A stretch of DNA of 64,000 bases from Marsupella aquatica (lineage: Eukaryota; Plantae; Marchantiophyta). Positions 3,001-36,589 of the stretch are shown here, one piece after another. The stretch is taken from assembly GCA_973895155.1 (NCBI GenBank), contig OZ316899.1:186001-250000 (forward strand), read 5' to 3'. Each line of letters begins with the position of its first letter. The first letter of the stretch is position 1. The translations under genes and the position numbers were made by a program. The notes beneath the pieces were generated by a model. That model ran no database searches and was not told where the DNA came from. It saw only the letters and a program-made list of their open reading frames with translations.

Positions 3001-3644
3001 CGGAGAGAGCAAATGGTATCATTGGGAAGATCCTCAACAAAACTGTAGCTGCGCACAAAACGGATTGGGATGATAAGTTGTACGCAGCGGTGTACTCGTA
3101 TAATCTAGCTTACAAAACTACTACGAGTCACAGCCCGTACTTTCTGGTGTTCGGCCAACATTCGTTGGTGCCCGTCGAATTTGAAGTGCACACTCCACGG
3201 GTCAGCATTCGGGATCGCTTACCTGAATCTGAAAGTCTGTCAGACCGAGCTTATCAGATTGAAGCCTTGGAAGAAGCACGGCTACTGGCAGCTCGACACA
3301 CCGTGAAGAAACAGGCAACTTCGAAGAAGCAGCACGACAAAGGACTACGGAGGGTCGACGTCGTGGCAGGCGATCTAGTCCTTCTGTACGATAGTAGGTA
3401 CATGCAGTTTCCAGGGAAGCTGCATACCCGGTGGTTGGGGCCCTTCCTTGTCAATCAGATCTACCGAAACGGATCTTTGGAGCTTGCGACGTATGCCGGC
3501 GATTTACTCCCCATGCGAATCAGCTACGATCGTGTAAAAAAGTACCACCATCAAGATGACGACGCCGATAGCGATGTTCGCGAGGACGCTTCACAATTAA
3601 GCAGGGAGCTATGTGACGCCGCCGGTACGGCGGTTAATGAGTGA
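2..3644 (+). pseudogene. pol: gypsy pol (protease C-terminal half, RT, RNase H, integrase with HHCC, DDE and GPY/F module), disrupted
   Basis: Motifs: IRLANG...LLGRPWL (PR); WVSPIVIVPKK, ICQDYRKLN, MPFGLCNAP, FIDDF (RT); DVSGFCIG, EALGII, TDH (RNase H); H..GGH..CDLC, WGIDYIG, SDRGTHF, NGMAERAN (IN); WLGPF. There is one frameshift near 1237 (tac-a-ttt-ctt-gac-ggg restores FLDGYSGYNQI) and two in-frame TGA stops (2628-2630 and ~2751). Confidence 0.95.
3594..3611 (+). other. candidate polypurine tract
   Basis: Purine-rich aagcagggag lies immediately 5' of the LTR start. It is short and imperfect. Confidence 0.45.
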
Positions 3645-3969
3645 TTCAGTCTAACTGTGCTCGGCACGCGCGTTAGGTGGGTCTTAGGCCGCTATTATTA
3701 GCATAACGACAGTATTTAGATAATCATTAGGGGTAGGACATCATTAGGCAATAAGGGGGACTTCAGGTTCGGGCTGGCGGCGGGTCGCTATTCGCACACC
3801 CGGGTTACGAGCGTGGAAGGGCCCCTCCCTCGGGTCCGTATAACGAACTTAAGGAAGCGGCCACTGACGCACGCTAACTCAGACCGGCGGAGTGGCCGGT
3901 ACACCACAAGCGTGAGCGGTTCAGCCTATGGGCGTCGAGGAGACGTCGGGGATCGACAAGCCCTCAAAG

Positions 3970-3977
3970 TATAAAAG
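3970..3977 (+). promoter_or_regulatory. TATA box of LTR-A
   Basis: TATAAAAG about 100 bp upstream of the LTR-internal ATG (4078), conserved in the second copy (36482-36489). Confidence 0.6.
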
Positions 3978-4077
3978 GGGAGCCAACCCTTTGTAGTGCA
4001 CCAGTCCATCAGTCCGCGCGCCAGCTTCGACCCCAGCTCTCTCGTTCTCTCTAGGTCGCCACTACTATCTCCTCTGA

Positions 4078-6720
4078 ATGTCGCACACGATCCTCTCCAG
4101 CTCGGCCATTCGATTCTGGACGCAGTTCCTATCTACCGGAAGGCACTTGGCCGATTCATTGAAACACGCCAACCCGCGCCGATACGAAATCGAACGCGAA
4201 TACGAGAGAGCCATCCGCCTAGCAGGACGACACCACTACGTCCTTAACTTTGACTACCCGTCTCAGAGCGAGCTTTACCGACCAGCAGAGGTATCTGGGT
4301 ACTTCTTCAACGAAGACAAATATATCGGGTTCTGGGAAGCATTGCTTCGGCTTCCGGACGAGGTCTTCAATATCCCGGGTACAATCGACCTGCAGCGACA
4401 TCACTTCGACCACATCCCTGCCCGGGTTCGGGCTGTCATTAACGGCGAGTCCAATACCAACCGTTCGACAAGAGCGTCCGCACTCGCTTCGGAGAACTTC
4501 TACCAGCACCTGCAGAGCTTCATGGGAACTCGGCCATCAACCAACATGACCAACTCAGCCGGGCCCGTACCCGTACCCGTGCCCATGCAACCTCAGGCTC
4601 AGCTTCAGCTTCAGCCTCAGCCGCAGCCTAGCCAAACCCCACCACCTATCACCCAGCCAGCACAGGTACGCTCCGTCATCAACGCTGTGGATCTTAGCGA
4701 TGACGACGAGGCTACCCCACCCTTGACCAGGCGGCCCAGAGGAACAAGCGCTCGGGGGGCCGACACTATATCGTCCCCACCCCCTTCTCTGACCCCAGGA
4801 GCGGCCCCAGTAGACAACATGGTGACCGTGGCCGCCCCGGGCCCGTTACCAACCGCAGTGGCACTCCCCAGGCCCGATCGGGAGGATGGGGAAGTATCAC
4901 CTTCCCCGAGTCAGTCACCGGGAAAGAAGAGGAAGGAATCCGCCACTACATCCGGGTTACCGTTGGCCACGGTAGCCGTAGCCAAGGTGACGATGCACCG
5001 CATGGGGGAAAACGTTCACAGCAACATCCTCCATCCCAAGCATGCGGTGTACCTGAAGACTCAGGGATTTGAGCACCTCACCTCTCTCCCCTGGAACACT
5101 TGCAGGTACTACGGGGAGGACATGACAGAATTCGTCAAGAATTATGACGACGTACGTCAATAGACTCGGCTGCGGGGAAGGAATATGTCCCTCACAGAAG
5201 AACGGCTCAAGATGATCTTTGGGTTACCCGAAGGTGACCATCGAGTCGAATCACGGGCTCCCGGGGGCAAGGGGACCAAGTACCAATCTTCAAGTTTTCC
5301 CTCAGAGGGAGTAGTAGACAACGGGTTCGTGATGAGGACCTGCCTCATGCCCGAGATAGCTGAGCGGCTGGAGTTCCAAAGGTACGCTCTCCACATGATG
5401 GAACCCCGAGGGGAGATCTCCGCCACCCAGGTTATCCAGGTCGAGAACTATCGACCTAGGAAATGGGCGTCGTACTTCGCTAAGAAATTCCATGAAGAGA
5501 TGGAGCGGCGAAGGAAGACGTTGTACATTGGCGGGAAGGCGTATTTCGCTAGCCACATCGAAATCATTCTTGAGTGGTACGCTCGGTTTGATCGACGAAC
5601 CCTTCCCCGCATCAACGTTACAAAGCTGGTTCCAGCTAGGTGGGTTTTTCCGGCATTGGAGAGACGGCCCCAACCTGAGGCCCGAAGTCCAGTGGACACG
5701 CCAGCTTCACCCACCCCACCTCCACAAATAGCTGTAACCGTAACCGAGGAGGCGCCGGAGGGGTCGGTCGTTGCAACCGTTGATGCGACCCAACTAGCCG
5801 GGCTAAGTACAGAAGTTGGTATGGCAGAGGTCTTACCCGAACCCGGGTCTCCCAAGGACCCGCCGGTGGCAATTCTGGAGAACCGGACATCGCTGCAGGA
5901 GGACACTCCAGCCCCTTCCAACGTTATGTCCCCAGGGCTAGACGTCACTGCCCCGGCCCCTGCGCGTGTTGACGTCTGCCCGTGCCCAAATCCGGACAGG
6001 CACAACTTGGACCACCCGGAACTCTTCGTACAGGGTACGTTCCTGAACGGGCTTCTGGGAGATTTCTCTCATCAAATTGCCCGGGATACCGGGGAGTTCA
6101 TGGCCCGGAAGGTAGCCTGTTTCTTCAATCAGGAGTTGGTTGCCGCCGTAAAGGCAGGTCGGGCCGAGTCGGAGGCCCTTCAGAGGATAGAGCGGTACCG
6201 GGTGGAGTCCGTGTACCTAAAGAACAAAGTGGCGGCTCAAGAGGCTGAGCTTCTGGCACTACGACCCAAGGTTGCAGCCGCCGATGAGTTGTTAGCAAAG
6301 GCGTACGCTCTTACCGCCCTAGCCGAACAGGCCAAAGCTGGGAACGAGGCCAAGATTACACGACTCCGGAACCAGATTGACAGTTTGAAGAAACAAGCTG
6401 TCACCTGGCAGAAAGACCTGGAGGAGGTCGAGGAACGAGCCCAGCGGGACACGGCGGAGATAGCCACGCTGCAGGCCGAGATGGCGCGGCTCCAAACCGA
6501 GGCCGAGAAGCAGGACCAGCTGGCGGGTAAACTGACGAGCGACGCCCAGCAGCTGGAGGAGGCATGTCAGGAGGCAGTAGAGGAGACGGACGTGGCGAGG
6601 CGAGAGAACGAATCTCTGCTGGACCAGGTCCAGCTCCTCAAAGCGGACAATGACAGGCTTCGAAGGCAGCGGGATGGCCGTTCCCATTCGAGCGGCTCTG
6701 GCAAGCGTGCCAGGCATTAG
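4078..6720 (+). pseudogene. LTR-internal ORF (~880 aa): N-terminal domain, P/Q-rich linker, plant retroelement accessory domain (Transposase_32/PMD-like), C-terminal coiled coil; one premature stop
   Basis: ORFs 4078-5163 and 5185-6720 are in the same frame, separated only by TAG at 5161-5163, which reads CAT in the other copy. Core motif YLKTQGFEHLTSLPW...EFVKNYD...LRG..MSLTEERL..IFGLPEG...LEFQRYALH; the C-terminus is heptad-rich. Confidence 0.85.
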
Positions 6721-8055
6721 CGGCGGAGTAGGAATAGATTAGGATTAGGATTGGCTTAGTCAGGCTCTTGGGACAGGCACCTGCCTTAGGTACAACAGCG
6801 CTGCCCTGCTGTCCAGCCTGCGTAGATTAGGATCTTCTAATAAGACACAGCCGTTTTCCGGCCTGACTGTCAGCTTAGTTAGGACCTTAGTCAGCGAATC
6901 TTCGGCGAGAGGACACCCCGTCCCTCGGCTCTTAGTATTTAGTGTACCCCTCGGTAGAGGCAGGGGGGTTTTTAGTTTCAGAGTCGGACATCCGCGGGAT
7001 ATGCGGGGAGTCCCGACCTCTGGGAATGACAGAGTACCAAGGGGAGGGGGTAGGACTAAGCTCGTCGGGCGAGTGCGGAGCCGGGCTCCGTTGTAGTGTG
7101 CACCCTCGGCCTTGAACCTGTTCATTCCAGGGCTGTCGGGTCAACTAAGTGTACGCATATGTTCCCTTTGTAGTAAAATCCTTTCCCATCATTTTCCTTC
7201 GTGTAAATCGAGATTGTATGCATGTGTGCGCATATGTGTGTGGGTTTCTCATATATGGGTGGCAGCGCCAGGCCGAACGCACTACCCGAGACGTGCACAG
7301 GGTGCAGCCTGCGGGTAAGTGGTTGCGAGCACGGGTTGAGGACCGGTATCATCGAATCCGGATCGAAGGCGGACAGCACGAAGGCTTAGAAGCCCTTAAG
7401 CCGGGGTCGATCCTGCTATCGACTAAGGTACGTTCCGGCGGCGGAACACAAACCATACCTAGGAGGTGTCCGTATTTAGCAGTATGCGCACTTAGCGCTA
7501 GTTTACGAGAATAAGGTGCATTACGTGCTTCCCTTCCTGCCCGAACCCTCAGGTTTACGAGGGATGTGCCCGTCTAAGCTGAAGTCTGAGTTAAGGCCAA
7601 AGCCTACGATGTGACACTGTGGCTTTGTTACTTTTTGTGTTCCGACACTTTGCATCCTTTTTTAGTAAAGTAGTTGATTTTTGTCAAATTTTGAAGAGAG
7701 AGTGGGTGAGAGAGACAGAAACAGACGTGGGATTGCATTGCGACACTGGGCAGGCAGATAGGCCAAAGGAATTGACAATAATCTGACAACCCTGCATCAC
7801 CGATGCCTTGGAACTAGCACAGAATGAGGCGTTGGCAACTACCTCTACGTAGCCCACCCATGCTCCAAGAAATCTCAGTTGCCCTTTCCCTCATAGGATG
7901 AGCTGGATGTCACGACTCCAAGGTTCCACTACATCTAACAGAGCATCTTTAGTGTCATTACCACTACATCTGTGTTCCTTGGGGTGATCAGATCTAGTGT
8001 CTTGAGTCAAGCATTTTCCGCCTGTTGTTGATAGTGGGACTCAACAGAGCTCAAT

Positions 8056-11600: not shown

Positions 11601-12861
11601 GGCGCTGCTCTCCTTTGTATTGCGCGTGGGAAGACCGAAATCTAGCGACATTTTCAAACCATGTATTGTGCAGCCGTTATTAGCAACTCGCATCCTTTGC
11701 TCACAAATTAACTGTCTTTCTCTATCACGCCCACGGTATTGCTGCTGAACTTTGCAATTTCAAACACTTCAATGTAGGCCTCTTTAACTTTCTCTGGGCG
11801 CTTCAAGGAGATGGATTCCAAACAGCCCTCCACCGGGATCTAATCACTGAGACTACACTTCAATGCCTACAACGTCACTACGCGCGCCACGAAGCGAAGG
11901 AAAGGAATGACGGAAAAAATGTGGCAGAGGCTTGCCTCAATTCAGCTCGGAAGCTCTTCACCAACAGCTCAGTCGCACCAACAAATCAAGTTGGCCTACA
12001 CTGTAGTACCTAGGACTTCTGATTGCTGGTCTCATAGCTCGCAAGGTGCACTGTCAAATTCCCATAACGCCACGTTCGACTGGCTCAGCTCCGCTATCAA
12101 GAAGGATGGGCTTAGCCTTCTTGAGGTCGATCCACTTACGGTGACAATTCTCCGAGGAGAGCTCCTGGTCAAACTCTCGAGTGTCGTCCACCTTGAAGGA
12201 ACCGGAGCTAACTCCTTTCCAGCTTCCTTTCTGCAACTGCGCATGGCCAGCCTGCTCTACTTTCAGCTTTCCAGATGCTACTGCGCGTCAGGGAGAGCAC
12301 TCTGGGTTGTGGGTTGGGCAAAGCCTTCCCTCAAATCCACAATAGTTTTGAATCCCTTTCCACCAGCCGGCTTAGCCCTGCCTCACTGATGTCCCCACCT
12401 CGCCAGAAAGCCACATTTTCATCCTTGTAAAGGGATCGTGCACTTTTGGAAGACCGAAGCCTGATGGGTGCAAGATTGGGGATATCAGCGGAACTAGGGA
12501 TTCCCTGGAAAACCAGCATCCAGGCAAGGCAAGGCATTCTTCAGTTTCAGCATCCTTTCCTGAGCTTCCAAGCCTTGCTGAGAATCAAAGGGCAAGAGGG
12601 ATTCCAGAGCCCCCTCTGTTTGATGCTATGGAATGACATCTGATTTTAGGGTCCCTAAACCCTAGTGACATCTATTTGTAGGAAAGAAGTCTTCATTGTT
12701 TACAAACTTGATTCATGCTTGTTTCATAGCAGTCCTTGCATTAATTAAAACATCAATGTGCACTTAGTTAAGAGAACTACTATTGGGGAATAAATGACCT
12801 TGCCATAAGGGTACTCTATTTGGATGGCAGTTTTTACTGCAAAAGTGAGGAGGTCTGGCTG

Positions 12862-13190
12862 GGATGGGACACCTTTTAATGTTCATTGGGTTTGCGCATT
12901 CTTAAGCCATGAATTGCTGACTAGTTTGTTCAAGATGACTCCAAAATTCAATGAATCCAGTATATACTAGATGGACTAGGTCTATGCAACTAGGATGGGA
13001 CACCTTTTAATATTCATTGGGTTTGCGCATTCTTAAGCCATGAATTGCTGACTAGTTTGTTCAAGATGACTCCAAAATTCAATGAATCCAATATATACTA
13101 GATGGACTAGGTCTATGCAACTAGGATGGGACACCTTTTAATATTCATTGGGTTTGCGCTTTCTTAAGCCATGAATTGCTAACTAGTTTG
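12862..13190. repeat. 131-bp tandem repeat, about 2.5 copies
   Basis: ggatgggacaccttttaat... recurs at 12862, 12993 and 13124 with near identity. Confidence 0.92.
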
Positions 13191-13686
13191 TCTTCTGACC
13201 ATGTTGTCATTATTATAACAAAAATTAAAGATCTTTATTTAGTCCAATTTCAACTCACAAATTTCCAACCATACTTTGATAACCTACAAGCAATTTTTAT
13301 AGATAATTTTTGGTTACATGCATGAATGATCTTAGTGTACACATATATGACATTGAAATCTACAATTTATTATGTAACCCTGAGGATTATCATTACAATG
13401 ACAATAATTCTTTTGAATCCCATGGGGAAACCTTTGTATTTTATCTCATTCATATCCTTGAAATGGTGTTGCAGAGTTCTTTGGCTCTTCATGTGAACAC
13501 AAAATCAAGGTGTAGGGTGAGCAAATTTTGTAGTAGTGGGTCAGATCTCTGCGTGGGCTCACCAAACTGAAGGTAGGGCTGGTGTCCATCCTATACACAG
13601 TGACACTTCCAATTCATTCCGATTACAGCAAATGTCTTTCCAACATGCCAACTAAACTGCGATGTCGATCTTATTGATTTGTAGGC

Positions 13687-14367
13687 ATGGCACGTAACAA
13701 GCAGAAGGCCAAGAAGCCTAAGACGGAGGTGAGCAACACACAGGTGTCTTGCACAGATTGTGAGAAGTTCTCCAAGAGTCAGGTGTACCAGAAGGCAGCT
13801 CATTGTTGTGCCATTTGTGATGATGGTGGGGGCTTGGTTATTTGTGATGGCCCATGCATGAGACATTTCCACGTGAACCCTGAGTCTAACCTTGCCGTAG
13901 AGAACAACTGTCCAGGGGTGGGCCTCCCCTCTGCACACGAGGGAGCCTGGATGTGCACTGATTGTGTAGAGAAGCAAGCTAAGTGTGCACAGTGTGGGAA
14001 GTTGGGGTCTTATGAGACCTTTGCTGATGCCGGGCTAGTTGTTCAGAAATGCCCTGACAGATTTTGCATAAGATTTTATTGTTTGTCATGTTTGCCTACT
14101 CATGCCACAGTTTGCCCACTTCATACATGCAAGGCATGTGGTGAGCATAATGATGAGTATTGGACAGACATAGTCCATTGTGTTAGATGTCCCACAATGT
14201 GGCATTTTCATTGCTTGAAGGACCTTCAAGCAGAAGGCTATGCTTGTGACAGAGAAATCTATGATCACTCTGCACATGGCGTTGATCGATGGATCTTTTA
14301 TTGTCATCGCCATCCGATTGATCCTACTTTGCGCATTCCTGTCAGAGATCACATATCTTGGCTTTGA
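13687..14367 (+). CDS. stand-alone EDM2-like PHD zinc-finger cluster protein (226 aa)
   Basis: CAICDDGGGLVICDGPCMRHFH; CTDC..KQAKCAQCGKLGS; CP..FC.RFYC..C; CPLHTCKAC; CVRCPTMWHFHCL; WIFYCHRHPIDPTLRIPVRDH. This matches the PHD array and IYC..H.ID..L.TP.RDH tail of plant EDM2. A tttgtag acceptor lies 2 nt before the ATG. Confidence 0.85.
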   Translation: MARNKQKAKKPKTEVSNTQVSCTDCEKFSKSQVYQKAAHCCAICDDGGGLVICDGPCMRHFHVNPESNLAVENNCPGVGLPSAHEGAWMCTDCVEKQAKCAQCGKLGSYETFADAGLVVQKCPDRFCIRFYCLSCLPTHATVCPLHTCKACGEHNDEYWTDIVHCVRCPTMWHFHCLKDLQAEGYACDREIYDHSAHGVDRWIFYCHRHPIDPTLRIPVRDHISWL

Positions 14368-14749
14368 AGCTAAACGAAGTGGGTTGGCAGAGTGCCCCTA
14401 ATGTGGATGTATTGTTTGGAGATTGCAGAAAGTTCATTTTTTATGAGAAGGACCATTGAGATATTAGGCAGCAGTTATCTTGTGCTTACATGTGGCTAGG
14501 TACATGCCACTAAAAACTTACCTTAAGCCTTCTAGGATCTCTTCAGACTGAGCAATCATTTTGAAAATTATAAACTTATTATTATGTGCCTATGAAGTAT
14601 AAGGTTTTTTTAATGGATAACAAATTCTTAATTTGTATAAGTTCTTGATTCTGATTCAATGGGTACTAGTTCTTTATTTATAACATATTTTATATGTGGC
14701 ATCACAAAATAATACTCAAGACACTATCTTCTTTTTGTATTCTATGCAG

Positions 14750-14838
14750 TATCATTCATGGCAATATTTGAACAATATTGAAGCCAGACCCAAGAAAAGA
14801 AGTGACGACTACTTTGGACAAATCAGTACTTTGGAAAG
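14750..14838 (+). other. candidate internal exon (YHSWQYLNNIEARPKKRSDDYFGQISTLE)
   Basis: Pyrimidine-rich acceptor ttctttttgtattctatgcag and donor aag/gtgagc. In the paralogous copy at ~30297 the EARP codons differ only at synonymous positions (gaa/gag, gcc/gcg, ccc/cca) and the donor is kept. Confidence 0.5.
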
Positions 14839-15015
14839 GTGAGCACCTAAACATCAAATTTATCCCTTTTTGTACTCCTAAATCTTGAATGATTCATAAA
14901 TTTAATGATAAAAGTTACAACTTACGGCATTTCGGTACTCAGATCTTAAATGGTTCGTGTATATTTGACCGGAATTGTAATTTTTACTAAATAAATTATT
15001 GTTCTTACATGGCAG

Positions 15016-16380
15016 ATGGGAAAAAGAAAGCGTAATACTTTAAGAAAAAAAGAATTGGGGGAAGATTTTTCTGTGGATGTATTTGTTACAGTGTGGGAAG
15101 ACCTCAAAAAATTAGATACCATAAAATTGAAGTTTGCACTTCATTGGATTCTATGCCATGACAACATCCTTGAACTTTTTGTTAAAAAAGTTCTTAAACT
15201 AGAGTCTTCAAGATTTTCAAGAACACTATTCTTGAATGGGTATCAAAATTGTAGAAGCCATATCATTCAGATCTTTCCTCCTGAGGTGTTCATTGAAATT
15301 GATGACGTCTTTCTTCATCACAGTTTCAGACTAAAATTACCTCAACCTTTGAAAAAATCAATTACCATGTTTTCTAATCTTGACATTAGAAAGCTTAAAC
15401 TTTTTCAAAAAGAAAGAGATAATATTTATAGAAGTGGAGGAACTTATGCCAAAGTTGAAGTAGACGTTCAACGTATTTCCTCTTCAAAACTAAAAACACT
15501 TACGGGTGTAATTTTAGGCGATTGGGATCAAACTACAACAACATTTACCTCTGATCCAAACTTTATTTTCTCAAAATTTCCATCAGACCTCATTATCATA
15601 GAAGAAAAAAAAGGATTTACCTATCTTTTTGATAGGTCTGGAATCAACCCATATTTGATAGCAATGATATTCCATCAAGATATCCTATCACCTGATTCAA
15701 TGATCTTCATTCGAAGATTATTAGAACAATTATATGCTGCCCATCATGTTATCCAAAGAGGGAAAGGAAAAAGATCATGGGAAAGTAAGATGACAGGGTT
15801 TGGTCCTTTTCATAATCCTTACAAAAAAGATCAAAGTTGTGTATCTTTTTATACTCATGAACAAAAGATAAAGACATTCTTCAATCAAGATTGTCCTGAT
15901 GCAGCCAATTTTGAAGACATGGTAGATAAATATTTTCATCGAGAGTTAATCGATATTATACTTGGACTCTACATGTGGTTATGTCCACAAATGTTAGACA
16001 GTTTTTTAGATTATTCTCATCCTTACTTACGTTCAAATGATTATGAGATGAACATATTTGATAAAGCACTAAAATGTAAAGGTCCTAGTGCTTATCAATT
16101 ATATATTAGTAAAGATTATTGTGTAGAAACTCACGCTGATCATGATACAGCAGAATTTACTTTATGTTATGTTAGTCATCCTGATGCCAAAATTTCTCCT
16201 GGAAACTTTATTATTCCAGAGTATGGAATATTATTACCTATTAGAGATGGTAATTTATTTTCATTTCGTAGTGACATTGTCCATGGCACAGGATATAGAA
16301 TTCCAACATCAAATCCTATATACGTAGGAGCTGTTACCATAAACAAAAAATTAGATAGACTTTTACAAAGAAAACATTAA
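15016..16380 (+). CDS. 2OG-Fe(II) dioxygenase, TET/JBP-like (454 aa)
   Basis: C-terminal DSBH signature: KMTGFG; YQLYISKDYCVET-H373-A-D375-HD; GNFIIPEYGILLPIRDGNLFSF; IV-H423-GT. Intronless and visibly AT-rich relative to the flanks. The N-terminus carries a basic NLS-like stretch (KRKR...RKK). Confidence 0.75.
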   Translation: MGKRKRNTLRKKELGEDFSVDVFVTVWEDLKKLDTIKLKFALHWILCHDNILELFVKKVLKLESSRFSRTLFLNGYQNCRSHIIQIFPPEVFIEIDDVFLHHSFRLKLPQPLKKSITMFSNLDIRKLKLFQKERDNIYRSGGTYAKVEVDVQRISSSKLKTLTGVILGDWDQTTTTFTSDPNFIFSKFPSDLIIIEEKKGFTYLFDRSGINPYLIAMIFHQDILSPDSMIFIRRLLEQLYAAHHVIQRGKGKRSWESKMTGFGPFHNPYKKDQSCVSFYTHEQKIKTFFNQDCPDAANFEDMVDKYFHRELIDIILGLYMWLCPQMLDSFLDYSHPYLRSNDYEMNIFDKALKCKGPSAYQLYISKDYCVETHADHDTAEFTLCYVSHPDAKISPGNFIIPEYGILLPIRDGNLFSFRSDIVHGTGYRIPTSNPIYVGAVTINKKLDRLLQRKH

Positions 16381-16852
16381 TAAAAAAGCAAATATATTAT
16401 TTACATTTATAATTATTTTTTATTACTCTAGACAGGTTAAAGTCTGGGTTCTTTAATTTGAGGAATATAGGATCATAGGAAAATGTGTAAGAGTAGGAAT
16501 CATGGCATCTTATGCTAGGAGTGGGAAAACCAGGAGGGTTAAGAGGAGATGATGGTCCAACTTAAGAGGAGGTGAAAAGGACCTAGTAGTGAAAGTAGGA
16601 ATCTCAATGTCAAGTGGATAGTTTTCCTCAAACATGTCATATATCTCCCTTAAGTTCTTACAGATCCTTGAAAGGCCTATAAATACATCATCCATTTTGA
16701 CACTCTCATCCACTACTAGGTAATTTATCTTGGAGAATAGAATGGGAGTGGTATTCTTGACCAAGTATTCATCATGTTGGACCCTAGATATATCATTTAT
16801 TTCATGAAAAGGAGCTTTAGAACCAATTTTCTGGAGGCAACTCCAAGGCTAG

Positions 16853-16873
16853 TTAGGGATTTAGGGTTTAGGG
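16853..16873 (+). repeat. interstitial telomeric motif (TTTAGGG, about 3 units)
   Basis: ttagggatttagggtttaggg followed directly by T8. Confidence 0.8.
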
Positions 16874-17720
16874 TTTTTTTTCCTTCAAAAAAACCATAGA
16901 AACCCACGGGAAGGGGGGCCCAACAGGGCAACAAAAACCGAGGCAGCAAAATGCAAACCTGGTGAGACCAAGGGGTCCAAAGGTGCAAGGGCTCAAAAGG
17001 AGTGAACAAGGTAGGGAAAAGCACTAATCAAAGGAAAATCCTGTTAGCTATGACTGTTTCAACTAGAAAGCCATGCATGATCCGAACGAGTAATCCACCT
17101 AAGACGTTCCTTACTCACCAACTCTTTGACTCTCAATAATCTAGTATGTTTTCTACTGGGACCAGAGGCCTCACAGAGGCCATGCAAGGAATCCAACATT
17201 TCTGAAAGGAGGAGATTCAAGTTGAACCTTCTACTATTAGCACGATTAAAGCGCTGCTCGTTCCATGCTAGCCAAAGAGTCCAAAGCACATGGTAAACCA
17301 CAAAAACACGAATGGTGCCCTCGATTGGAGTGCAGCCAGTGACCTCCACGACAGAAAAAATGTTCAAGTACCGCCAAGAAATAACTCCAAGAAAAGTCCA
17401 CCAAGCTAGCTGCCAACACCTCTTAGCAAAGGGACAAGTGAAGAAAAGATGAGGAGAAAAACACCTCTAAAATATGGGCGCAAAGTAGACAGCTTCCATC
17501 TCCTTAATTTACCAATTCTGCTAGCTTGAACCCCAGTGAATAACCCTTGAGCTGCTATCCTCCAGAGAAAAATGGGGACTTTCAACGGTAAATCAGAAGA
17601 CCAGAGAGCATTCCAGAGTTTGTTCCACTCAAGGTCTAATAAAGAAATGCTCCAAATCCTATTAAGTCTTAGAGAATCAGAGCCTTTCGGTTGAATCACA
17701 GCCTTTCGGTCAAATCAAAG
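16874..17720 (-). mobile_element. 5'-truncated L1-clade LINE (zf-RVT C-terminus, 3' UTR, poly(A))
   Basis: Minus-strand WNKLWNALWSSDLPLKVPIFLWR (zf-RVT) and VLWTLWLAWNEQRFN, frameshifted between 17406-17699 and 17059-17367. A8 tail at 16874-16881. Confidence 0.8.
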
Positions 17721-18317
17721 GTACATGCACGGGCATTGGGCAGGGTGAATCTTGTCAGAAGTTCACATTTGTTAGACTAGAACCATTGGGTTGCACGAGC
17801 TTTGAGGTCTCCTAAGCAATCACCAGTGCCTTTGATTTTGTCCCTAAACTAAGCAAAGTTCTCTCGTAGCATGTTAAGGAGAGCCCTCTACCTCTAAACA
17901 ATGAGATCCTAAACTAACTTCACTCGAAACATCTCTAGGTATGTAAATAGACAAACACTCATCAGGGAGGTCCAATTCTCAATTTCACAAAGAGTAGACA
18001 TAGAAGTAGGCCCTATGGAGATAGATGAAATCAATAGAACGGAGAAACTAGTGAGGAGCAAGAAAACTACTCATACACAAATGGTCACTCCCAAGTTGGA
18101 ATTTTCCAAGTTTTAGAATAGAAAGAAAAGTGACTCTTCCATGGTAATAATGGATAGAAACCAAACAGAGATGAATAATAAGAAAAAAACAACTAATACA
18201 AAGATAAATTGAATTTAGGGGTGAAATGAATACAATGGGCATCATCATACCTCAGAGCTTTGTTCATTATAATCCCCTGGGAAGTCCACATCTAGAGATT
18301 TTGACTTTGATTCTTAT

Positions 18318-19823
18318 CTAAGTGTAATTGTAATCTGTAAACATATCAAAGTGAATTCGCTCCATGGTCGTGTTGTCCCTTTGATCAAGTGCAGCATATC
18401 GAGCTTCCCGGTCTTCATCTACTTGCTCTTGTCTTGCATGACACTGAGCCCATCTTCTCCTACTCATGTCATTCCTAAATGTCATTTGTCTCTCCTCTCT
18501 CTGTCCGGGGGTTTCCTCAACCATACCTTCCTCATTGTACAGTTTATACACACCGGGTCCTCGCTTGTCTGAAAGTTGTAGTTCATCATCAATGTCCTCT
18601 TCTTCCAGGGATTCAGTAATGAGGTAGGACTTACTGACACCTGTAGCACTTCCCCATCTTAGCATAGGTAGCTCACCTTTCAGAAACCCAGCTGCCACCA
18701 TCAAATTGTACATCCTAGCAGCTGAAGGCCCTGCTCGACTAAATAATTTCCACAAATCTAGACCACCATCCTCCATCTCTCCAGTAACTGAGATGCGTAC
18801 ATCTGCTTTCTTGCCTGACCTTCCCACAACTTCGTATAATGTTCTTGTGAAGCAATACCATTTAAAATACCGGGGATCCTTGAGCATGTTGTTGTATGTT
18901 TCAATGTGATGGACACTCCACAACCATTTCTCGATCTGCTCCAAAAAACTTATCTGCTGATTTGTCTTGTAACTAGGTGTCATTAGTATCCGGATACTTG
19001 GATGGTGCTGCCAGATAGAAAAGTAAGTGGGGGTCGCTTCATACATAACAGCTATTCCATCCTGTCCTTCTATGTGATCTCCCTCTCGCACTTGGTAATC
19101 CTGTGGTGGATCATGATATCCCCAAAGCAAAGCGGGACCAAAGTACTTCCCAATATTATAATTATACACACCTAGCTCTAACCATGTAATAACTACTTCT
19201 GTGGGAGTCACTGCTTCCCAATAACTACTTTTCTCCAAGTGAACCAAAGATACATCTTCTGGGTTAAAGGGGTATACATCATTTCTAAAGTAACCCCCTT
19301 GACGAGCCACCACCGCTGGGTCACGCCTCAATTCATAAAAGAACCTCATTGCCAAGTGACTAAGCTCAGGTGCAATTGGTAGATTAAAACTCATCCAATC
19401 ATCAGATACTACTATGTCAGAGGTGAAAAATGGGTTGAATGCTACAGTAACCCCGTCCCTCTCCATCTTCTTCCACTGGGCAGCCTGCAAAAATGTGATG
19501 AGTCGGGGAAGTGTATACTTCCCACAATTGATCCGTACTTCCCGAGCAGCCCACGTTTTCAATATCAAGGGCAACAACTCATATAACTTACTATAAACAT
19601 CTAGACAACATTTTCTCTGGTTATCCCTCTGTGCTAATCCCTCATGAACCATATTAGCCATTGCTTTAAGTGCAATAAAAGTTTCATTTTGAGGATGCTC
19701 CCTTTCTAATTCCGACAACATGAATTGAGCTATTCGACTGTTAGCCCGGCCTCCTAATCTATAAGACAAATCCTCAGGTAATTGTACATTAATATGTCCA
19801 GACCACTCAAAAAAAGGCAGCAT
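18318..19823 (-). CDS. hypothetical protein (501 aa), unrecognised; acidic/charged C-terminus
   Basis: Uninterrupted 1.5-kb ORF with globular-looking composition, starting 68 bp downstream of the 716-aa ORF on the same strand. Confidence 0.6.
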   Translation of the reverse strand: MLPFFEWSGHINVQLPEDLSYRLGGRANSRIAQFMLSELEREHPQNETFIALKAMANMVHEGLAQRDNQRKCCLDVYSKLYELLPLILKTWAAREVRINCGKYTLPRLITFLQAAQWKKMERDGVTVAFNPFFTSDIVVSDDWMSFNLPIAPELSHLAMRFFYELRRDPAVVARQGGYFRNDVYPFNPEDVSLVHLEKSSYWEAVTPTEVVITWLELGVYNYNIGKYFGPALLWGYHDPPQDYQVREGDHIEGQDGIAVMYEATPTYFSIWQHHPSIRILMTPSYKTNQQISFLEQIEKWLWSVHHIETYNNMLKDPRYFKWYCFTRTLYEVVGRSGKKADVRISVTGEMEDGGLDLWKLFSRAGPSAARMYNLMVAAGFLKGELPMLRWGSATGVSKSYLITESLEEEDIDDELQLSDKRGPGVYKLYNEEGMVEETPGQREERQMTFRNDMSRRRWAQCHARQEQVDEDREARYAALDQRDNTTMERIHFDMFTDYNYT

Positions 19824-19891
19824 GAATCTAATCCTTATGGGGACTTCATCCCAAATCTGATCCCAATCTCCAGGTCTGATATCCCTTTTAT

Positions 19892-22042
19892 TTACCTCTG
19901 CATTGGCCGAAGGGTTTCCAGTTCGAGGGCTTCATCAACCTCAATCGGATCCCAACGATCACTCTGCTCTCCAGACATTGTGGTCCAGTGGTTGATGCTG
20001 ATCTTTTTCAGGATCTCAACTCGTTGTTTGTTTATTGGGTCTTTCAAAGCCCCATCCAATAACTTGGTGGCTTTCTTTGCTTCATCTCTCAACTCTTGCA
20101 CTCGAAGTTCCCAAGCATCATAAGCATGTCGTGGTATCCGAACATCCTTAGAATTACATTGCACCAACTCTCGCTGGGCTATTTCACCCAACCACTTCTT
20201 TCTCTCCTTCTCTCTCTGCTTGGCACTTAATTCCAATGTTCGGATATACTCCACCCTCTCGAGGTTTTGCTGCTCCAACTTTTGTAATGCTTCAAAAGTC
20301 AGTGTGAGCTGCTGGGTAGTTTCTTTAAGCGACTTCTCTATCACTGTTATCATCTGAGAGGTATGACCTGCACATTGAGAGTGAGTATGGCATACTTTAG
20401 CAAATTCATCTTCTAATTGCAGCCGCTTCTCCTTTTCTTCTTCATATTGGCCTGAAGCCTCCTTGCTCGCTTTTTGGGCCTCCTTCAATTGTGCATTCAA
20501 CTCTCTGCCCTCTTCTTCAAAGGCAGCTACATACCGACTCAATTCTTCTGCCTTTGTGGTATTCTGAGTGTGTTGCTTCTCTGCTTCCTTCCGGACAGTT
20601 GTCACTTCCTCTATCAGCAAAGTAATCCTTGCCTCTTTTTCTTGGGACTTCATCTCCTGCTCATGCAACATTTGTTCTCGTATCTCCACCTTCTCATTGA
20701 GGAGTCTCACCATCTCCTTGTTTTCCTTCAGCAAACTCTCCAACTTCTCAATCCTCCCTTGGAGCTTAAGGTTGGTGTTGGCGCTTCTGAACATATCTTC
20801 TTCCTGCTGCTTTGCCTTTTCTCTCTCTCTTACCCCAGTTTCTACTTCGAGTGCACAAATGTGGGCCAACCCGTGCACTTCCTTGGCTTGTTGTAACCAC
20901 AAACGTTTGTCAGTTCCTACAGGGAAGGGTCGATTAATAAACTTCATCCTCTGCTCAAAGGAGGTGAGCTCAGACAAGACAACATTTGATAGCAACTCTG
21001 TCAACATTGGTTGATGGTATACATAATCAGATTGGGCAGTCGATGTCATAGCTTCTTCTTCCTCTTTGACCGGGATTATCACTCTCCTTTTCTTTCTTTT
21101 CAAGGACTTAACACATGCATTCCCCTTTATCCTCAATGTGCGTAATCCTTGTGCGCCTTCTTCATCAGAATTGTCCACTTCATCTTCACTGCTTGAGACC
21201 AGGCCCGAGACCAGGGATCCCTTTGGGGCATAGAGTCTCGGATTCTCTTCTTCCCCATCCTCGCTCTCCGACTCCTCCTTTTCTTCTTCCTCCTGATTTG
21301 CCTCCTCTCGCTCCTCTGAATCGCTGTCCTGCAAGGAGATTATTGTTACCCCGGTTGTGACCCTGTCGGCAGTGAGGGCGTGGTCCATCACTACGCTTAA
21401 TACATATGCACAAACTGACGGAAACAATGGTAGCCCCTTCCTGGTTATAACACTTGCAAGGTTGCGCTTCCATATCAACAATGGGTGAAGAGTTCCATCT
21501 AATACTCTCTTGGCAACTGATAGTTGCTCTGGCGTTACATAATGGTACCCACTCTTGAGGATTACCCACTTAGTAAAGAACTCCACATACTTGCGGACCT
21601 CTTGGTTTGTCATAACGCCATATTGGACCTTCTTCTCATGCTGGAGCTCTCCTCCTTGTTTTAGGAAGGCACTCATCTCTCTTCCCGTAAGTGCCTCAAT
21701 TGGATAGTCAGCTGGTAGGCTATCTGGGGCGGAAATCCCAAACAAAGTCGCTAATTCCTTGTTGGGGATGCGGTAGGCTTGTGCTCTGTATGTGATAAAC
21801 ACTCCAGTATCTGCAAAATTGACATCCACAATATCTTTGTAAAGCTGACAAGCACGATCAATTGATACAAACCTATCAATTCGGACAAGCCCATAGCATC
21901 GAGCCCTTTCAAATATCTCTCTGTATTCTTCAATGAAAGCCACCTCAGAGATTGAGTTCCTCAATCTTTCTTCTGGAGTTGATCGAGGTTGTTTATTTTT
22001 GGCTGGAGGGACCTCTACTCGGGTTTGATTTGGAGATGTCAT
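19892..22042 (-). CDS. retroelement accessory-type protein (Transposase_32/PMD-like domain + acidic linker + long coiled coil, 716 aa)
   Basis: N-terminal FIEEYREIFERARCYGL...ITYRAQAYRIPNKELATLFGI...YVEFFTKWV; E/S-rich linker; about 250 aa of heptads. A homologous fragment lies at 49217-49531. Confidence 0.7.
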   Translation of the reverse strand: MTSPNQTRVEVPPAKNKQPRSTPEERLRNSISEVAFIEEYREIFERARCYGLVRIDRFVSIDRACQLYKDIVDVNFADTGVFITYRAQAYRIPNKELATLFGISAPDSLPADYPIEALTGREMSAFLKQGGELQHEKKVQYGVMTNQEVRKYVEFFTKWVILKSGYHYVTPEQLSVAKRVLDGTLHPLLIWKRNLASVITRKGLPLFPSVCAYVLSVVMDHALTADRVTTGVTIISLQDSDSEEREEANQEEEEKEESESEDGEEENPRLYAPKGSLVSGLVSSSEDEVDNSDEEGAQGLRTLRIKGNACVKSLKRKKRRVIIPVKEEEEAMTSTAQSDYVYHQPMLTELLSNVVLSELTSFEQRMKFINRPFPVGTDKRLWLQQAKEVHGLAHICALEVETGVREREKAKQQEEDMFRSANTNLKLQGRIEKLESLLKENKEMVRLLNEKVEIREQMLHEQEMKSQEKEARITLLIEEVTTVRKEAEKQHTQNTTKAEELSRYVAAFEEEGRELNAQLKEAQKASKEASGQYEEEKEKRLQLEDEFAKVCHTHSQCAGHTSQMITVIEKSLKETTQQLTLTFEALQKLEQQNLERVEYIRTLELSAKQREKERKKWLGEIAQRELVQCNSKDVRIPRHAYDAWELRVQELRDEAKKATKLLDGALKDPINKQRVEILKKISINHWTTMSGEQSDRWDPIEVDEALELETLRPMQR

Positions 22043-25295: not shown

Positions 25296-28200
25296 TTAAT
25301 CCTTTAAATTTTTTGTTTGAAGGTTTCGCCACTTGTCTTTCAGATCAATCTGTGTCAAAGTCAATAAAACATGATAGATGAGCATGCAATTTGTCTTGTG
25401 TGCAAGGGTAAATACAGTAATACAAAAAGTAGGATATAACCATAGAAGACTTACTTCAGACCGGTCAATGAAGTGTGCACCCTCGGAAGCAAGAATTCGA
25501 CTCCACTTGCCTGGTCCAAACCTGAAATTAACCTTGGCTTAGAAAACCTCTTGTTCTTAGAGAAAAACACCAATTAATACCAGCTAGGTAAGATATTACG
25601 TCAATGCATTTTGATTGATAAGTCATAGGTTCTCTACTTGCCTGCGGACTGCCTGTTTGAGACAATTTGTTTCCTCTTTAGACCACCTTTTAGTTGCCCT
25701 ACGAACACGTATTAGACCATTGGGGCCTTCTTTCATGACTGCCCGGGTGATCAATTTGGAATTTTGTAATCCAATACAATCTTGATGCAGCCTCAACCTC
25801 TTAGATGACGGGCTGGACGTATCCTCCTTCCCTGTGCCCTGCAAAGACATCCAATTTGTAATACTCCAGCAAGGATTGCAAACATTACAAAATACAGTAC
25901 ATCTTCCATACTGTACAAGATAGATGTTGTTGTCACCAATGATTGAAAACAATGAAGTTTCCTGCAGACCACCTCACCTTGGCACTCGAAGTTGCTAGAT
26001 TGCCCTCCTCTGCTTTGTCTTTGGATTGGAACGGGGTGATTAGGGACCGAGAAGGAGGATTTAGCAAATCTATAATTCGTTTTCTCCCTAAGTTCTTCCC
26101 CATATCACAAATGCCTTTGTAATTCTCACTCTGTGGGGCTGGAAGCTCAACTAATCTCTGTTCTTCCGGATGAATTAGGTGTTGGACTTCATTTGACGAT
26201 TGTTGCATTTTGCTAGTAGTAATTCCTCTGTTGAGCATATTAACCTCTGTGCTCACTTCTATCACAAAAAAAACACCACATTGGAGACTTCAATTCTCCA
26301 TCAACAGCACATACAAAGACCTAGGAGTCTGAAACTACTCTATACACTATCAATCTGAACTAATCAATGCTAGTTCTAGTGCAATTTTGGTCAAACTGTA
26401 AGACTACATATGAGTTGAACTATGACATTGGTGGGCACTACATACCATACACTGGTTGGAAGGATGCCTGCTTTGGCAACAATACAGGCGCCATGATCTG
26501 CTGGTTGGCCACCTCCAAAGGAGCTCCTTCATTCTCATCTATCAAATTCTCTTTACCTGTTCCAATCTCCACCCGCCTTGTTCTATAGTGATCCAATTTA
26601 GACTGCAAATACAACCATCCAATTAACGGAAATGATATTTCTCCACCACAATATGTATATTCACAATGACTTGCAGCAAACAACAAATCAGTCCCACCTT
26701 TTACCAAATCTGATAGCTAGTGAGAGAAGACAAGGCCCAAACATTGTTAAAACAATGCATCTGTCTCCTAGCCTGTGAGTGCGGGACAAAACCAATGGAA
26801 AAATCCCAAACTTTTTTTGCACCACTCCATCGAGCGGTGCAAATTAAACCAACTATTTAATAAGACATTTAAGGAAACAATCCTTTGGAGGAGGAGGGGA
26901 AGGGAGAGAATCATGAGCTAAGTTACCCAAGGTTGATCCAAATCAATACCTGAAGCTCAACTCGGACTTCCTCGGCAACACTTTCATACTTGTCTTTCAA
27001 AGTATCCACATCCCTACGAACTGCGGCCAAGGTGGTCACCATCATTTCATTCCTCTGTAGGAGTAGCTCCAACTTGACACCTATTGTGTTGTTTGCCTCT
27101 ACTTGCATCCTCAAGTTGGTCAGTATTGTTTCGTTCCTCTCTGTCTGTAACTCCAAGGTGGTTGTCATCTTCTCATTCCAGTCTTTCTGGCGCTCTTTCT
27201 CTATTTTCAACTCACCTACAACCTCCATCAAGCACAGGCATGATGTACAACAAGATCTGACTGTTTTTGAAGCTTCTGAAATGCTCAAGGGGAATACATT
27301 CTTTAGTGTGAATATGTCGGAGTGCTCCGGCAACTCCGTACCATTTGTTGTCAACTCGATACCAAATTTTGTCTTCAATTTTTCCTGTTCTCTATCCTCT
27401 GTTCCAGGCGTTGCTTCCGCTTCGCCCAATGTCTTCCTTGACATTTCATGTTCTTTACCCCCCGACAGAGGTTCTGTCTCTTGAAGACTCAATGTCTTCA
27501 TGGACATTGCATGATCTTCATGGATTATCCCAACCTTTGTCACCATCTCATTTTCACAAGCTCGATTGAACAAAGAACCATCTTGGTGTTCGTTCACAAA
27601 AGAACCATCTTGCTGACCTTGCGGCTTTGCTCCACTGGTTGAGAATAGCCCGAGAAGTCCTCCACTACTACATGGATCACCCTCATGCACACTAGAAACA
27701 ACAGTTCCTTTGGCATGTCCTGACATTGCATCATCGTCGTTCACAATTTGCAGATGCATTGTGAGATGTTTTTGTTCTGTGCAGTTCTCCTCCATCTCGT
27801 GGTTTTCCACTCCATGATGCTCCACACCCACTTGAGTAGATGTTTTCCAATGGAATACTTGTGGTCTTGGCAAAGACACAATTGAAGGGGACTTCTCACT
27901 CAACAGAATTTGCAGATGGGATCCAAAATTGTAAGTGCAAGTCATGTTACCTTCGGAGATTTGTTTCCGGGCTCTGCAAAGGAGGTCGATCAGTCTCCCG
28001 CCAAGATATTCTCCCCAATTCTTCCTACTACTTGTTTCTTCAACTTGCTTTATCTGGCACAAAGACACATCGGCCCTGCTCCCCTTAAAGTGAAGAGCCC
28101 CCAATTGAAACTCTAGCCTCTCTCTGATTAGGGAATCTTTGCAATATTGCAATGAGTAAGAACCATTGCTGTTCCTTTTAATCCCTGCAAATGACCTTGG

Positions 28201-28512
28201 ATTATATCGAACTGCTTTTTGCTCAAATGGCTCCCCTGACCCTTGCAACTTGAATGTCTTCTTGATAGAATCCAAACTCAAGTCTATTCTTCCCCCACAA
28301 ACCCATGTTTCAGATTGTTCACTGTCAAAGTTCCGGATGAAATCTATCATGTCAGACTTAGAATGACTCTTAGTGTCCCAACGAACTCCCAAAACACAGT
28401 CTGCAAGCCCATTGTGCTGAAGATATTCTGAATGTCGCGCTTGACACAATGTTGTCACCACAAGTGGTGGGATAAAATAGAATGTTGGCATCGCCATAGG
28501 CTTGGAAGACAT
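25296..28512 (-). CDS. spliced fusion gene: retroelement accessory domain + coiled coil + C-terminal TRF-like (telobox) Myb domain, ~772 aa; exons complement(26950-28512, 26446-26602, 25978-26258, 25642-25838, 25455-25521, 25296-25349)
   Basis: All five introns have consensus ends (gtattg, gtatgt, gtgagg, gcaagt [GC donor], gtaagt; AG acceptors) and the phases (0,1,0,2,0) join without stops. The last three exons give KRWSKEETNCLKQAVRRFGPGKWSRILASEGAHFIDRSEIDLKDKWRNL. Exon 1 has YLQHNGL...W...DFIRNFD...GGRIDLSLDSIKKTF...ERLEFQLGALH...FGSHLQILL, homologous to the LTR ORFs. The 5' start is uncertain. Confidence 0.85.
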
Positions 28513-30728: not shown

Positions 30729-30780
30729 CCTTTTGGACGTGGTTACAATTATCCCTATTTTCATTGCTCCCTGTGTGAAT

Positions 30781-36481: not shown

Positions 36482-36489
36482 TATAAAAG
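36482..36489 (+). promoter_or_regulatory. TATA box of the solo LTR-A
   Basis: TATAAAAG about 100 bp upstream of the ATG at 36590. Confidence 0.6.
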
Positions 36490-36589
36490 GGGAGCCAACC
36501 CTTTGTAGTGCACCAGTCCATCAGTCCACGCGCCAGCTTCGACCCCAGCTCTCTCGTTCGCTCTAAGTCGCCACTACTATCTCCTCTGA

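Follow-up and report, generated by a model that had tools for sequence, protein, structure and literature searches.

A predicted TET/JBP-fold dioxygenase gene and a PHD-finger gene are probably chance neighbours in a transposon-rich region of the liverwort Marsupella aquatica

Do two open reading frames that lie side by side in the genome of the liverwort Marsupella aquatica form a functional unit, or are they neighbours by chance? The question is raised by ORF-A (13687-14367, + strand) and ORF-B (15016-16380, + strand) in a window of 64,000 nucleotides, the whole stretch of DNA that was analysed (contig OZ316899.1, positions 186,001 to 250,000). A preliminary description had read the pair as a candidate reader-eraser module, an H3K9me-reading PHD protein next to a putative 5mC oxidase, inherited as two genes or spliced into one, that serves transposons against silencing. 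Its placement of two ORFs on the same strand and about 650 bp apart was right in coordinates and strands, and the gap from stop to start is 648 nt. A 454-codon ORF is very unlikely to arise by chance in DNA of 31.5% GC, and both ORFs are far beyond chance. Both have homologues elsewhere and dN/dS ratios of about 0.2 (0.21 for ORF-A against the related locus L007, 0.20 for ORF-B against the related locus L006), which indicates purifying selection.

ORF-A is intronless and encodes 226 amino acids with three NSD-type PHD-like zinc fingers and its own conserved stop after DHISWL. The coding sequence and about 200 nt of conserved 3' sequence make up a homology block (13675-14567, + strand), across which L007 and the window are 79% identical in blastn, with nothing aligned past the block. 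When the family profile (A6) was compared with the PDB, it matched residues 646-839 of NSD2 (E 2.4e-11), the stretch of PHD1-3. In Pfam, ORF-A itself matches the NSD-type PHD models PF23011, PF22908 and PF23004 below gathering (19-23 bits); in its homologues P0004 and P0005, PF23011 and PF23004 are above gathering and PF22908 is also reported. The alignment of five homologues has 72 invariant columns, including the Cys/His zinc ligands and the C-terminal D-H-I-S-W, and DHISWL-stop is the conserved terminus of the family. An AlphaFold model made from five sequences (pLDDT 45.7) was too poor for fold inspection. The naming of ORF-A as a PHD protein was thus confirmed by the NSD2 profile match and the NSD-type Pfam models, and on homology and conserved ligands ORF-A is a predicted PHD-finger protein with an NSD-type cluster.

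The ORF-A product would presumably bind chromatin or histone tails. About 190 residues of the family align with the NSD2 segment, as part of the N-terminal PHD cluster of NSD1/2/3, and the zinc ligands are kept; in contrast to the NSD proteins, ORF-A is a stand-alone protein of 226 amino acids without SET or PWWP domain. The label 'H3K9me-reading' is an interpretation and not an observation, and we treat it as conjecture. The PHD5-C5HCH module of NSD3 (4gnd), the NSD unit reported as an H3K9me3 reader, gave a non-significant comparison with the family profile (E 0.2). Arabidopsis EDM2, whose PHD fingers are NSD-like but atypical, reportedly binds methylated H3 tails at heterochromatic introns, and presumably the idea of H3K9me reading came from there. 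The methyltransferase-like C-terminal region of EDM2 appears to be absent from ORF-A.

ORF-B encodes 454 amino acids. Its N-terminus is basic (MGKRKR), the N-domain is helical, and the C-terminal part folds as a double-stranded beta-helix in the model. Searched alone, it gave no Pfam match at E up to 1, so that the curated models PF12851 (Tet_JBP) and PF20515 (2OG-FeII_Oxy_6) were not matched in the scan, and no PDB sequence match. Sub-threshold Pfam matches were seen in distant relatives only (P0025 to PF12851, E 0.13; P0049 and P0065 to PF20515, E 0.002-0.004). A word-index protein search returned one relative, P0001, and a metagenome locus scan with the dioxygenase alignment A4 returned none, while an exhaustive profile search of 1.84 billion representatives yielded a family of 61 representatives. 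This family is multi-copy and rich in fragments and decayed copies, and a chytrid fungal protein is among the distant relatives of the gene. The MGKRKR start is present in ORF-B, P0007 and P0032.

The family profile (A3) matched CMD1, the TET homologue of Chlamydomonas reinhardtii (7cy4), with E 0.0088 over the HxD..H core, which is the sole sequence-level match to the core. The AlphaFold model of ORF-B is confident (pLDDT 83.5, pTM 0.87), and in a Foldseek search with it ranks 1-22 were held by CMD1, CcTet and TET2 (E 4e-7 to 5e-5), followed by FTO, AlkB-type enzymes and small-molecule oxygenases. The matches have modest TM-scores (0.29-0.37), in part an effect of the query, which contained the unrelated helical domain of the N-terminus. 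The CMD1 profile match, the confident model and the 22 best Foldseek matches bear out the suggestion of a TET/JBP-fold dioxygenase. Judged by its modelled fold, ORF-B is a member of an undescribed and very divergent TET/JBP-like family in a land plant, one without a curated model or named relative. The further label '5mC oxidase' is again interpretation and not observation.

Among known enzymes CMD1 (PDB 7cy4-7cy8) is the best match both by profile and by Foldseek (E 4e-7). The two proteins share the H-x-D-x-D motif, the distal-His motif HGT and an origin in the green lineage, and in both the canonical C-terminal 2-oxoglutarate (2OG) arginine appears to be unavailable to the co-substrate: CMD1 has the residue, but it points away, and the ORF-B clade has other residues at this position. 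CMD1 uses ascorbate as co-substrate, which ORF-B may do as well. The identity between them is just 13-17%, the helical N-terminal domain of ORF-B is different, and its acidic residue near CMD1 D350 is shifted by one position. The fungal TET/JBP enzymes (CcTet; PF20515), including copies borne by DNA transposons, take structural ranks 5-22 and resemble the ORF-B family in being multi-copy and rapidly diversifying with decayed copies; ORF-B differs from them in that no PF20515 or PF12851 match, transposase linkage, TIRs or TSDs were found for it, and in its land plant host. With the metazoan enzymes TET1-3 (TET2 catalytic domain, PDB 4nm6) ORF-B shares the fold, the iron triad and, by structural similarity, the base-flipping class, but it has no Cys-rich domain, no CXXC domain, no large low-complexity insert and no apparent equivalent of TET2 R1896, and the identity is 10-12%.

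The HxD...H iron triad of ORF-B (H373, D375, H423) is intact and aligns with H345, D347 and H397 of CMD1 in the HMM alignment. Of the aligned relatives, 39 have sequence at these positions, and nearly all of them keep the triad. Within the motif H373-x-D375-x-D377, D377 at position H+4 is invariant in the family and the residue at H+5 is variable. Characterised enzymes recognise the N4 amino group of cytosine through an H+5 residue that is Asp or Asn (CMD1 D350, NgTET1 D234, TET2 N1387; PMC7854593, from which the CMD1 residue roles were taken). For 2-oxoglutarate binding the criterion applied was a pair of arginines for the C1 and C5 carboxylates (TET2 R1261 and R1896; NgTET1 R224 and R289). 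R248 is near-universal in the family and is the candidate first arginine, an equivalence drawn from sequence. In the column of I435, where the last core strand begins, Arg occurs only in the distant relatives P0049, P0061, P0062 and P0065, and the ORF-B clade has I, A, V, T or S; R418 and R428 are conserved nearby. With other residues in place of the canonical C5-carboxylate arginine, the clade may bind its co-substrate in another way or use one that is not 2-oxoglutarate. The loss is compatible with ascorbate use of the CMD1 type and is not diagnostic of it.

By analogy with CMD1, TET2 and CcTet, ORF-B would flip a pyrimidine out of duplex DNA and modify the C5-methyl group on 5mC, possibly on T. 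The protein is probably nuclear, and its basic N-terminus resembles a nuclear localisation signal. It is also possible, though we consider it the less probable case, that a TET/JBP-fold enzyme of this kind does not act on 5mC in DNA at all but on RNA, on thymine as JBP does, on 6mA as reported for CcTet, or on a substrate other than nucleic acid. The acidic residue at H+4 instead of H+5 as in CMD1, NgTET1 and TET2, the missing canonical 2OG arginine and the modest TM-scores would fit such a substrate, as would FTO, AlkB-type and small-molecule oxygenases standing next in the structural ranking. Against it, all 22 of the best structural matches are DNA-base-modifying TET/JBP enzymes, CMD1 is the one protein matched in sequence at the core, and the N-terminus is basic and NLS-like.

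Part of the DNA between the two coding sequences would belong to the ORF-B gene, which appears to start with a separate non-coding exon, followed by an intron whose end immediately precedes the ATG. ORF-A and ORF-B lie in separate homology blocks, 13675-14567 and from about 14706 onward. The approximate start of the dioxygenase block (14706-14749, + strand) is common to the window and L006 (alignment A5, blastn); upstream of it L006 is unrelated to the window sequence 14368-14705. The block is joined at about 14774 by a truncated and decayed second dioxygenase copy in the window (copy B; 30296-30741, + strand), which comprises the UTR exon, the intron with its hairpin and codons ~16-86 with stops. 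In a self-blastn of the window this copy, 15.5 kb away, is 75% identical to the 5' end of the ORF-B gene. The putative 5'UTR exon (14750-14838, + strand) has AG/GT borders (...TATGCAG| and |GTGAGC), and both copies in the window, A (the ORF-B gene) and B, share its GGTGAG donor with L006. The putative 5'UTR intron (14839-15015, + strand) ends in CAG directly before the ATG (CAG|ATG at 15013-15018). Inside it lies a conserved hairpin of ~80 nt (14909-14986), with >90% identity across three copies; 29 pairs are predicted, of which one is compensatory. Rfam gave no match to the hairpin and no credible family anywhere in 12000-18500.

The segment 14750-14838 had previously been proposed as a candidate coding exon between the two ORFs. 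The segment with its AG/GT borders does exist, but a coding role is not supported: the window has one open frame, L006 has none of the three, and in copy B the last codon is a stop to the reading frame. Because all three frames are closed in L006, the closest relative, the segment is best read as a 5'UTR exon. The splice arithmetic of that proposal is correct, in that the exon joined to 15016 is out of frame (a stop follows at codon 256), the acceptor ending at 15026 is in frame and a donor exists at 14341. An alternatively spliced PHD-dioxygenase fusion through this weak donor, the exon and the weak acceptor is therefore open on paper, as the path 13687-14340 + 14750-14838 + 15027-16380 runs for 699 codons without internal stop; we nevertheless hold it to be extremely improbable. 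Both sites that it would need are weak, and it would pass over the strong CAG|ATG acceptor that lies 11 nt upstream of the weak one and is also conserved in L006. It would also delete the invariant DHISWL tail of the PHD family and the MGKRKR start of the dioxygenase, with its conserved MGKR, and no relative longer than 457 amino acids was found among the 1.84 billion representatives searched (0 of the 61 in the family). We take the products of ORF-A and ORF-B not to be fused, and there is no evidence that connects their functions.

Co-inheritance of the two genes had also been suggested, and the related loci speak against it. These are short contigs of 1-5.5 kb, and the informative ones hold distant homologues of 22-56% identity. 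In L001 and L008 a BRCT-repeat ORF, not a dioxygenase gene, comes after the PHD gene; the L001 ORF (L001:2983-3945) passes the gathering threshold of Pfam BRCT_2 and has its homologue in the L008 ORF (E 3e-6). In other genomes a BRCT-repeat ORF would be the usual neighbour of the PHD gene. On the dioxygenase side, no PHD gene occurs in the 1.5-2.3 kb that L003, L004 and L011 cover upstream of the gene, and L006, which is 79% identical to the window, has unrelated sequence and no PHD gene in the ~335 nt covered upstream of the block. L003 and L011 are not independent loci because they fall into one 90%-identity cluster, so the four dioxygenase loci stand for three homologues. Copy B of the window has no adjoining PHD gene either. 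The metagenome locus scan with the PHD alignment returned one short contig only, L010. A recurrent PHD-dioxygenase synteny was accordingly seen in none of eight informative places (L001, L008, L003, L004, L011, L006, L010 and copy B), among which L010 offers just 670 nt downstream and L003 and L011 count as one cluster. A PHD-dioxygenase pair with a longer spacer would escape the closest contigs, which are too short to exclude it, as L006 covers ~335 nt upstream and L007 ends 295 nt past the PHD stop.

We therefore regard ORF-A and ORF-B as probably independent, lineage-restricted genes that are chance neighbours in a transposon-rich liverwort region, ORF-B being a TET/JBP-fold dioxygenase gene; the reading of the locus as a reader-eraser module is not supported by the sequence comparisons. 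A younger association can be imagined, in which the dioxygenase gene landed by the PHD gene in this lineage and is now co-regulated with it, and the PHD protein, a polypeptide of its own, brings the enzyme to marked chromatin. The same strand, the short distance, the intact state of both genes under purifying selection and the plausible role of both products as nuclear chromatin or DNA proteins would agree with this. Both families were also seen in sequencing runs numbered close together (SRR18067xxx), which implies a shared taxonomic range, and dS to the closest homologues is similar for the two genes (0.57 and 0.68). We still consider such a young pair improbable: no informative locus has conserved synteny, the PHD family has a conserved neighbour of another kind, the BRCT ORF, the compositional histories differ (GC3 0.45 for ORF-A and 0.21 for ORF-B), and in a region rich in TEs mere adjacency says little.

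That the two genes serve transposons, as had been supposed, is likewise conjecture. In fungi, TET/JBP genes are carried by Kyakuja/Dileera/Zisupton, hAT, EnSpm and Helitron elements (PMC12730594), and ORF-B could by this precedent be the cargo of a transposon and protect its element from methylation-based silencing. The multi-copy family with its many fragments and decayed copies, the truncated copy 15.5 kb away, the chytrid relative and the position of ORF-B in a low-GC island (14600-16600) within a TE-rich region would all suit a cargo gene. The window, however, has no transposase domain in ORFs of at least 150 amino acids (unrecognised transposase families being possible), and neither ORF-A nor ORF-B could be connected with a transposase, TIR or TSD. 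A search for inverted repeats around the two genes yielded short matches only, no better than chance. We do not accept its best pair, 14600/16867 (75% complementary, of low complexity), as a TIR: the similarity to L006 and copy B does not reach back to 14600, and the pair lies outside their common block. None of seven related contigs, all short, has a transposase adjoining the dioxygenase gene, and the putative UTR exon and intron resemble those of an ordinary host gene. Cargo is for these reasons an unlikely reading, though a more plausible one than a young pair.

About 1 kb downstream of ORF-B lies a zf-RVT-like remnant of a non-LTR retrotransposon (17409-17699, - strand; PF13966 zf-RVT, E 0.0015, below gathering), which marks the end of the neighbourhood of the dioxygenase unit. 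PDB and Pfam searches with the large minus-strand ORFs nearby were uninformative. Direct repeats of 4 kb (3612-7618 and 36123-40115) were considered as LTRs around both genes and rejected, as the interval contains neither RT nor integrase and the first repeat simply comes after a gypsy pol. This Ty3/gypsy pol (1311-2627) is closest to sequences of Calypogeia fissa (67-69% identity) and Riccia sorocarpa.

To our knowledge, land plants are generally thought to be without the TET/JBP enzyme family. [quoted passage not shown] Targeted literature searches, with Iyer et al. (2014) outside their scope, found no report of TET/JBP genes in bryophytes. The dioxygenase is hence the interesting part of the locus, and a constrained, intact TET/JBP-fold family in a liverwort would extend the enzyme class into land plants. 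More tentatively, liverworts may carry an undescribed and diversified TET/JBP-like family that acts on methylated DNA bases, maybe with a non-canonical co-substrate as in CMD1, and provides an oxidative or hypermodifying route for 5mC beside the DME/ROS1 glycosylases; at this locus the gene could come under the influence of the neighbouring chromatin reader. The altered co-substrate site of ORF-B could point to another unusual DNA modification.

ORF-A, the PHD gene (13687-14367, + strand, 226 aa), and ORF-B, the dioxygenase gene (15016-16380, + strand, 454 aa), are separated by 648 nt and have the coordinates and strand of the preliminary description, whose assignments of ORF-A to the PHD proteins and of ORF-B to the TET/JBP-like enzymes also hold in kind. 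The reader-eraser module proposed there is not supported by the sequence comparison, and several independent lines speak against ORF-A and ORF-B as a unit. The homology block of the closest PHD contig (L007) aligns with the window over 13675-14567 only (79% nucleotide identity), and that of the closest dioxygenase contig (L006) aligns from ~14706 onward, also at 79%, the upstream sequence of L006 being unrelated to the window. A truncated, decayed copy of the dioxygenase 5' end at 30296-30741 (copy B) includes the upstream exon and intron and is without the PHD gene. GC3 is 0.45 for ORF-A versus 0.21 for ORF-B, and the latter is contained in a 2-kb low-GC island. In two other contigs it is a BRCT-repeat ORF that stands beside the PHD gene, and no PHD gene was found when 1.5-2.3 kb upstream of the dioxygenase were searched in three further contigs (L003, L004 and L011). 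L003 and L011 fall into one 90%-identity cluster and were therefore counted as one locus. A lineage-specific, recently formed functional pairing of both genes is very unlikely, and we keep it at all because the comparison contigs are short and mostly carry distant homologues.

The splice arithmetic behind the proposed fusion was right: 13687-14340, 14750-14838 and 15027-16380 together are open for 699 codons, and the strong acceptor at 15016 is out of frame, leading to a stop at codon 256. The fusion protein itself is not supported, as no family member is long enough and the conserved termini would be lost; the donor at 14341 would remove the invariant DHISWL tail of the PHD family and the acceptor at 15026 the conserved dioxygenase start. 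In addition, none of the three frames is open across the linking segment 14750-14838 in L006, and in copy B the segment is closed at its last codon. This segment is preceded by AG and followed by GTGAGC, and a CAG acceptor directly abuts the ATG of ORF-B. The GGTGAG donor is kept in all three copies (window, copy B and L006), but with its frames closed the segment is best read as a putative first exon that is non-coding, with a 5'UTR intron behind it that ends at CAG/ATG. The putative intron contains an ~80-nt hairpin (14909-14986, + strand; 30437-30515 in copy B; ~505-585 in L006), which is >90% identical among the three copies versus 75-79% for the adjacent coding sequence. Its predicted pairs number 29, one of them with a compensatory change (U-A to C-G), and fold z-scores of -2.1 to -4.5 were obtained on the + strand only. 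The hairpin has no match in Rfam; possible roles are that of an intronic precursor of small RNA and that of a regulatory element. L006 also shows a shifted mid-gene stretch with in-frame stops (1306-1500), after which the frame is regained; this points either to decay of the copy or to an error in assembly.

Judged by its sequence, ORF-A is a real, constrained, stand-alone PHD protein, because dN/dS versus the closest copy in L007 is 0.21. Along the protein PF23011, PF22908 and PF23004 follow in that order, all three being NSD-type PHD and sub-threshold in Pfam, and two homologues lie above the curated cut-offs. A search of 5.8 billion clustered proteins yielded just four relatives (43-77% identity, similar length, none with a name), and one more came from a metagenome scan. 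The family profile aligns over ~190 residues with the PHD1-3 cluster of NSD2 (646-839; E 2.4e-11) and gave no significant match to NSD3 PHD5-C5HCH (4gnd; E 0.2). The Cys/His ligands and the final residues D-H-I-S-W are invariant, with the stop directly after in five of six members. The structural model was unusable (pLDDT 45.7), and the H3K9me reading ascribed to ORF-A is not supported and stays a conjecture.

In two unrelated contigs, L001 (1911-3948) and L008 (232-1891), a tandem-BRCT-like ORF lies on the same strand as the PHD gene, 350-400 nt downstream of it. Both BRCT-repeat ORFs are mutually homologous (E 3e-6), and the one of L001 is above the Pfam BRCT_2 cut-off. The PHD family may normally be part of such a PHD and BRCT pair, or of a larger mobile unit. 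No BRCT-repeat ORF of this kind was found in the window. Of two further ORFs in L001, one is F-box-like and the other weakly matches the Transposase-associated domain (E 0.031).

For the dioxygenase gene as transposon cargo there is a precedent in the TET/JBP genes of many fungal DNA transposons (PMC12730594), and the dioxygenase family looks multi-copy, decayed copies included. However, no transposase domain was found in any window ORF of at least 150 aa, no credible terminal repeats surround the dioxygenase unit, no transposase was seen adjoining any homologue, and the UTR exon and intron resemble an ordinary host gene; we consider cargo unlikely. The service to transposons and the anti-silencing role that had been proposed for the gene pair are not supported.

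The window itself is eukaryotic and transposon-rich. The ORFs at 71-3644 belong to a Ty3/gypsy pol, in which RT, RNase H and integrase domains were recognised; its part at 1311-2627 has the nearest relatives in Calypogeia fissa, a leafy liverwort (67-69% identity), with Riccia sorocarpa next (52-55%), and on this basis we regard the source as a liverwort. Directly after this pol starts the first copy of a 4-kb direct repeat (3612-7618 and 36123-40115; 93% identical, 32.5 kb apart) with long coiled-coil ORFs in each copy (4078-6720 and 36854-39220), and the repeat probably represents the 3' portion of a gypsy-type element that has an extra ORF. Four large minus-strand ORFs (501, 716, 529 and 1038 aa; at 18318-22042, 26923-28512 and 33062-36178) have no match in Pfam or PDB; three of them share a globular N-terminal part, together with an acidic stretch and, C-terminally, a long coiled coil, and the group has the appearance of a repeat-encoded protein family that is as yet unclassified. 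Also on the minus strand, an 879-aa ORF (41045-43684) is RecQ-like, with DEAD/ResIII and Helicase_C domains, and its C-terminal region is rich in Cys/His. In its N-terminal part the motif GGHETATVGHHYAHS resembles, judged by eye, the tyrosine recombinase C-terminal box, a resemblance that would point to a helicase-bearing, Crypton- or DIRS-like element. An array of degenerate ~18-nt repeats (GAGGGTACTCTTATC...) at 30778-31190 directly follows the truncated dioxygenase copy, three tandem copies of an AT-rich 131-nt unit at 12859-13251 precede the PHD gene by ~450 nt, and a non-LTR element remnant is located downstream of ORF-B on the opposite strand. CpG observed/expected is 0.29 and 0.38 for the two genes (13687-16380) versus 0.66 for the whole window, a strong depletion that would fit long-term methylation of cytosines in the region.

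ORF-B alone gave no match to Pfam or PDB sequences and one relative in a word-indexed protein search. When 1.84 billion representatives were searched exhaustively with a profile, 61 relatives were obtained, mostly fragments from short contigs and at most 457 aa long; among ten looked up by cluster one had an organism assigned, the chytrid Geranomyces variabilis, with a distant protein. A 39-sequence profile matched the catalytic core of the Chlamydomonas TET homologue CMD1 (E 0.0088) with H-x-D-x-D and the distal HGT aligned, and distant family members gave weak matches to Pfam TET-like models. The AlphaFold model built on the 39-sequence alignment is confident (pLDDT 83.5, pTM 0.87), and among solved structures its best 22 matches are without exception TET/JBP enzymes (CMD1, Coprinopsis CcTet, human TET2), followed by FTO and AlkB with E-values roughly ten to hundred times higher. 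From the predicted fold alone we infer that ORF-B may act on 5mC in DNA. The basic N-terminus MGKRKR, conserved in three members, suggests import into the nucleus.

Within the family H373, D375, D377, H423 and R248 are nearly universal. In TET2 and NgTET1 the 2-oxoglutarate C5-carboxylate is canonically held by the arginine that heads the last core strand (PMC7854593); this arginine is found only in distant family members, and I, A, V, T or S occur throughout the ORF-B clade. In CMD1, which takes ascorbate instead of 2-oxoglutarate as co-substrate, the canonical C-terminal arginine is likewise unused (PMC7854593), whereas in the ORF-B clade it is replaced. We read ORF-B as belonging to the TET/JBP structural class, within a family that lies outside every curated model and appears to have an altered co-substrate site. 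Its dN/dS versus L006 is 0.20 (first 213 codons). The dioxygenase itself is the part worth following up, as on sequence and model it appears to represent, in a land plant, a constrained and putatively undescribed family of TET/JBP-like enzymes whose co-substrate site is non-canonical and whose nearest characterised relative is CMD1.
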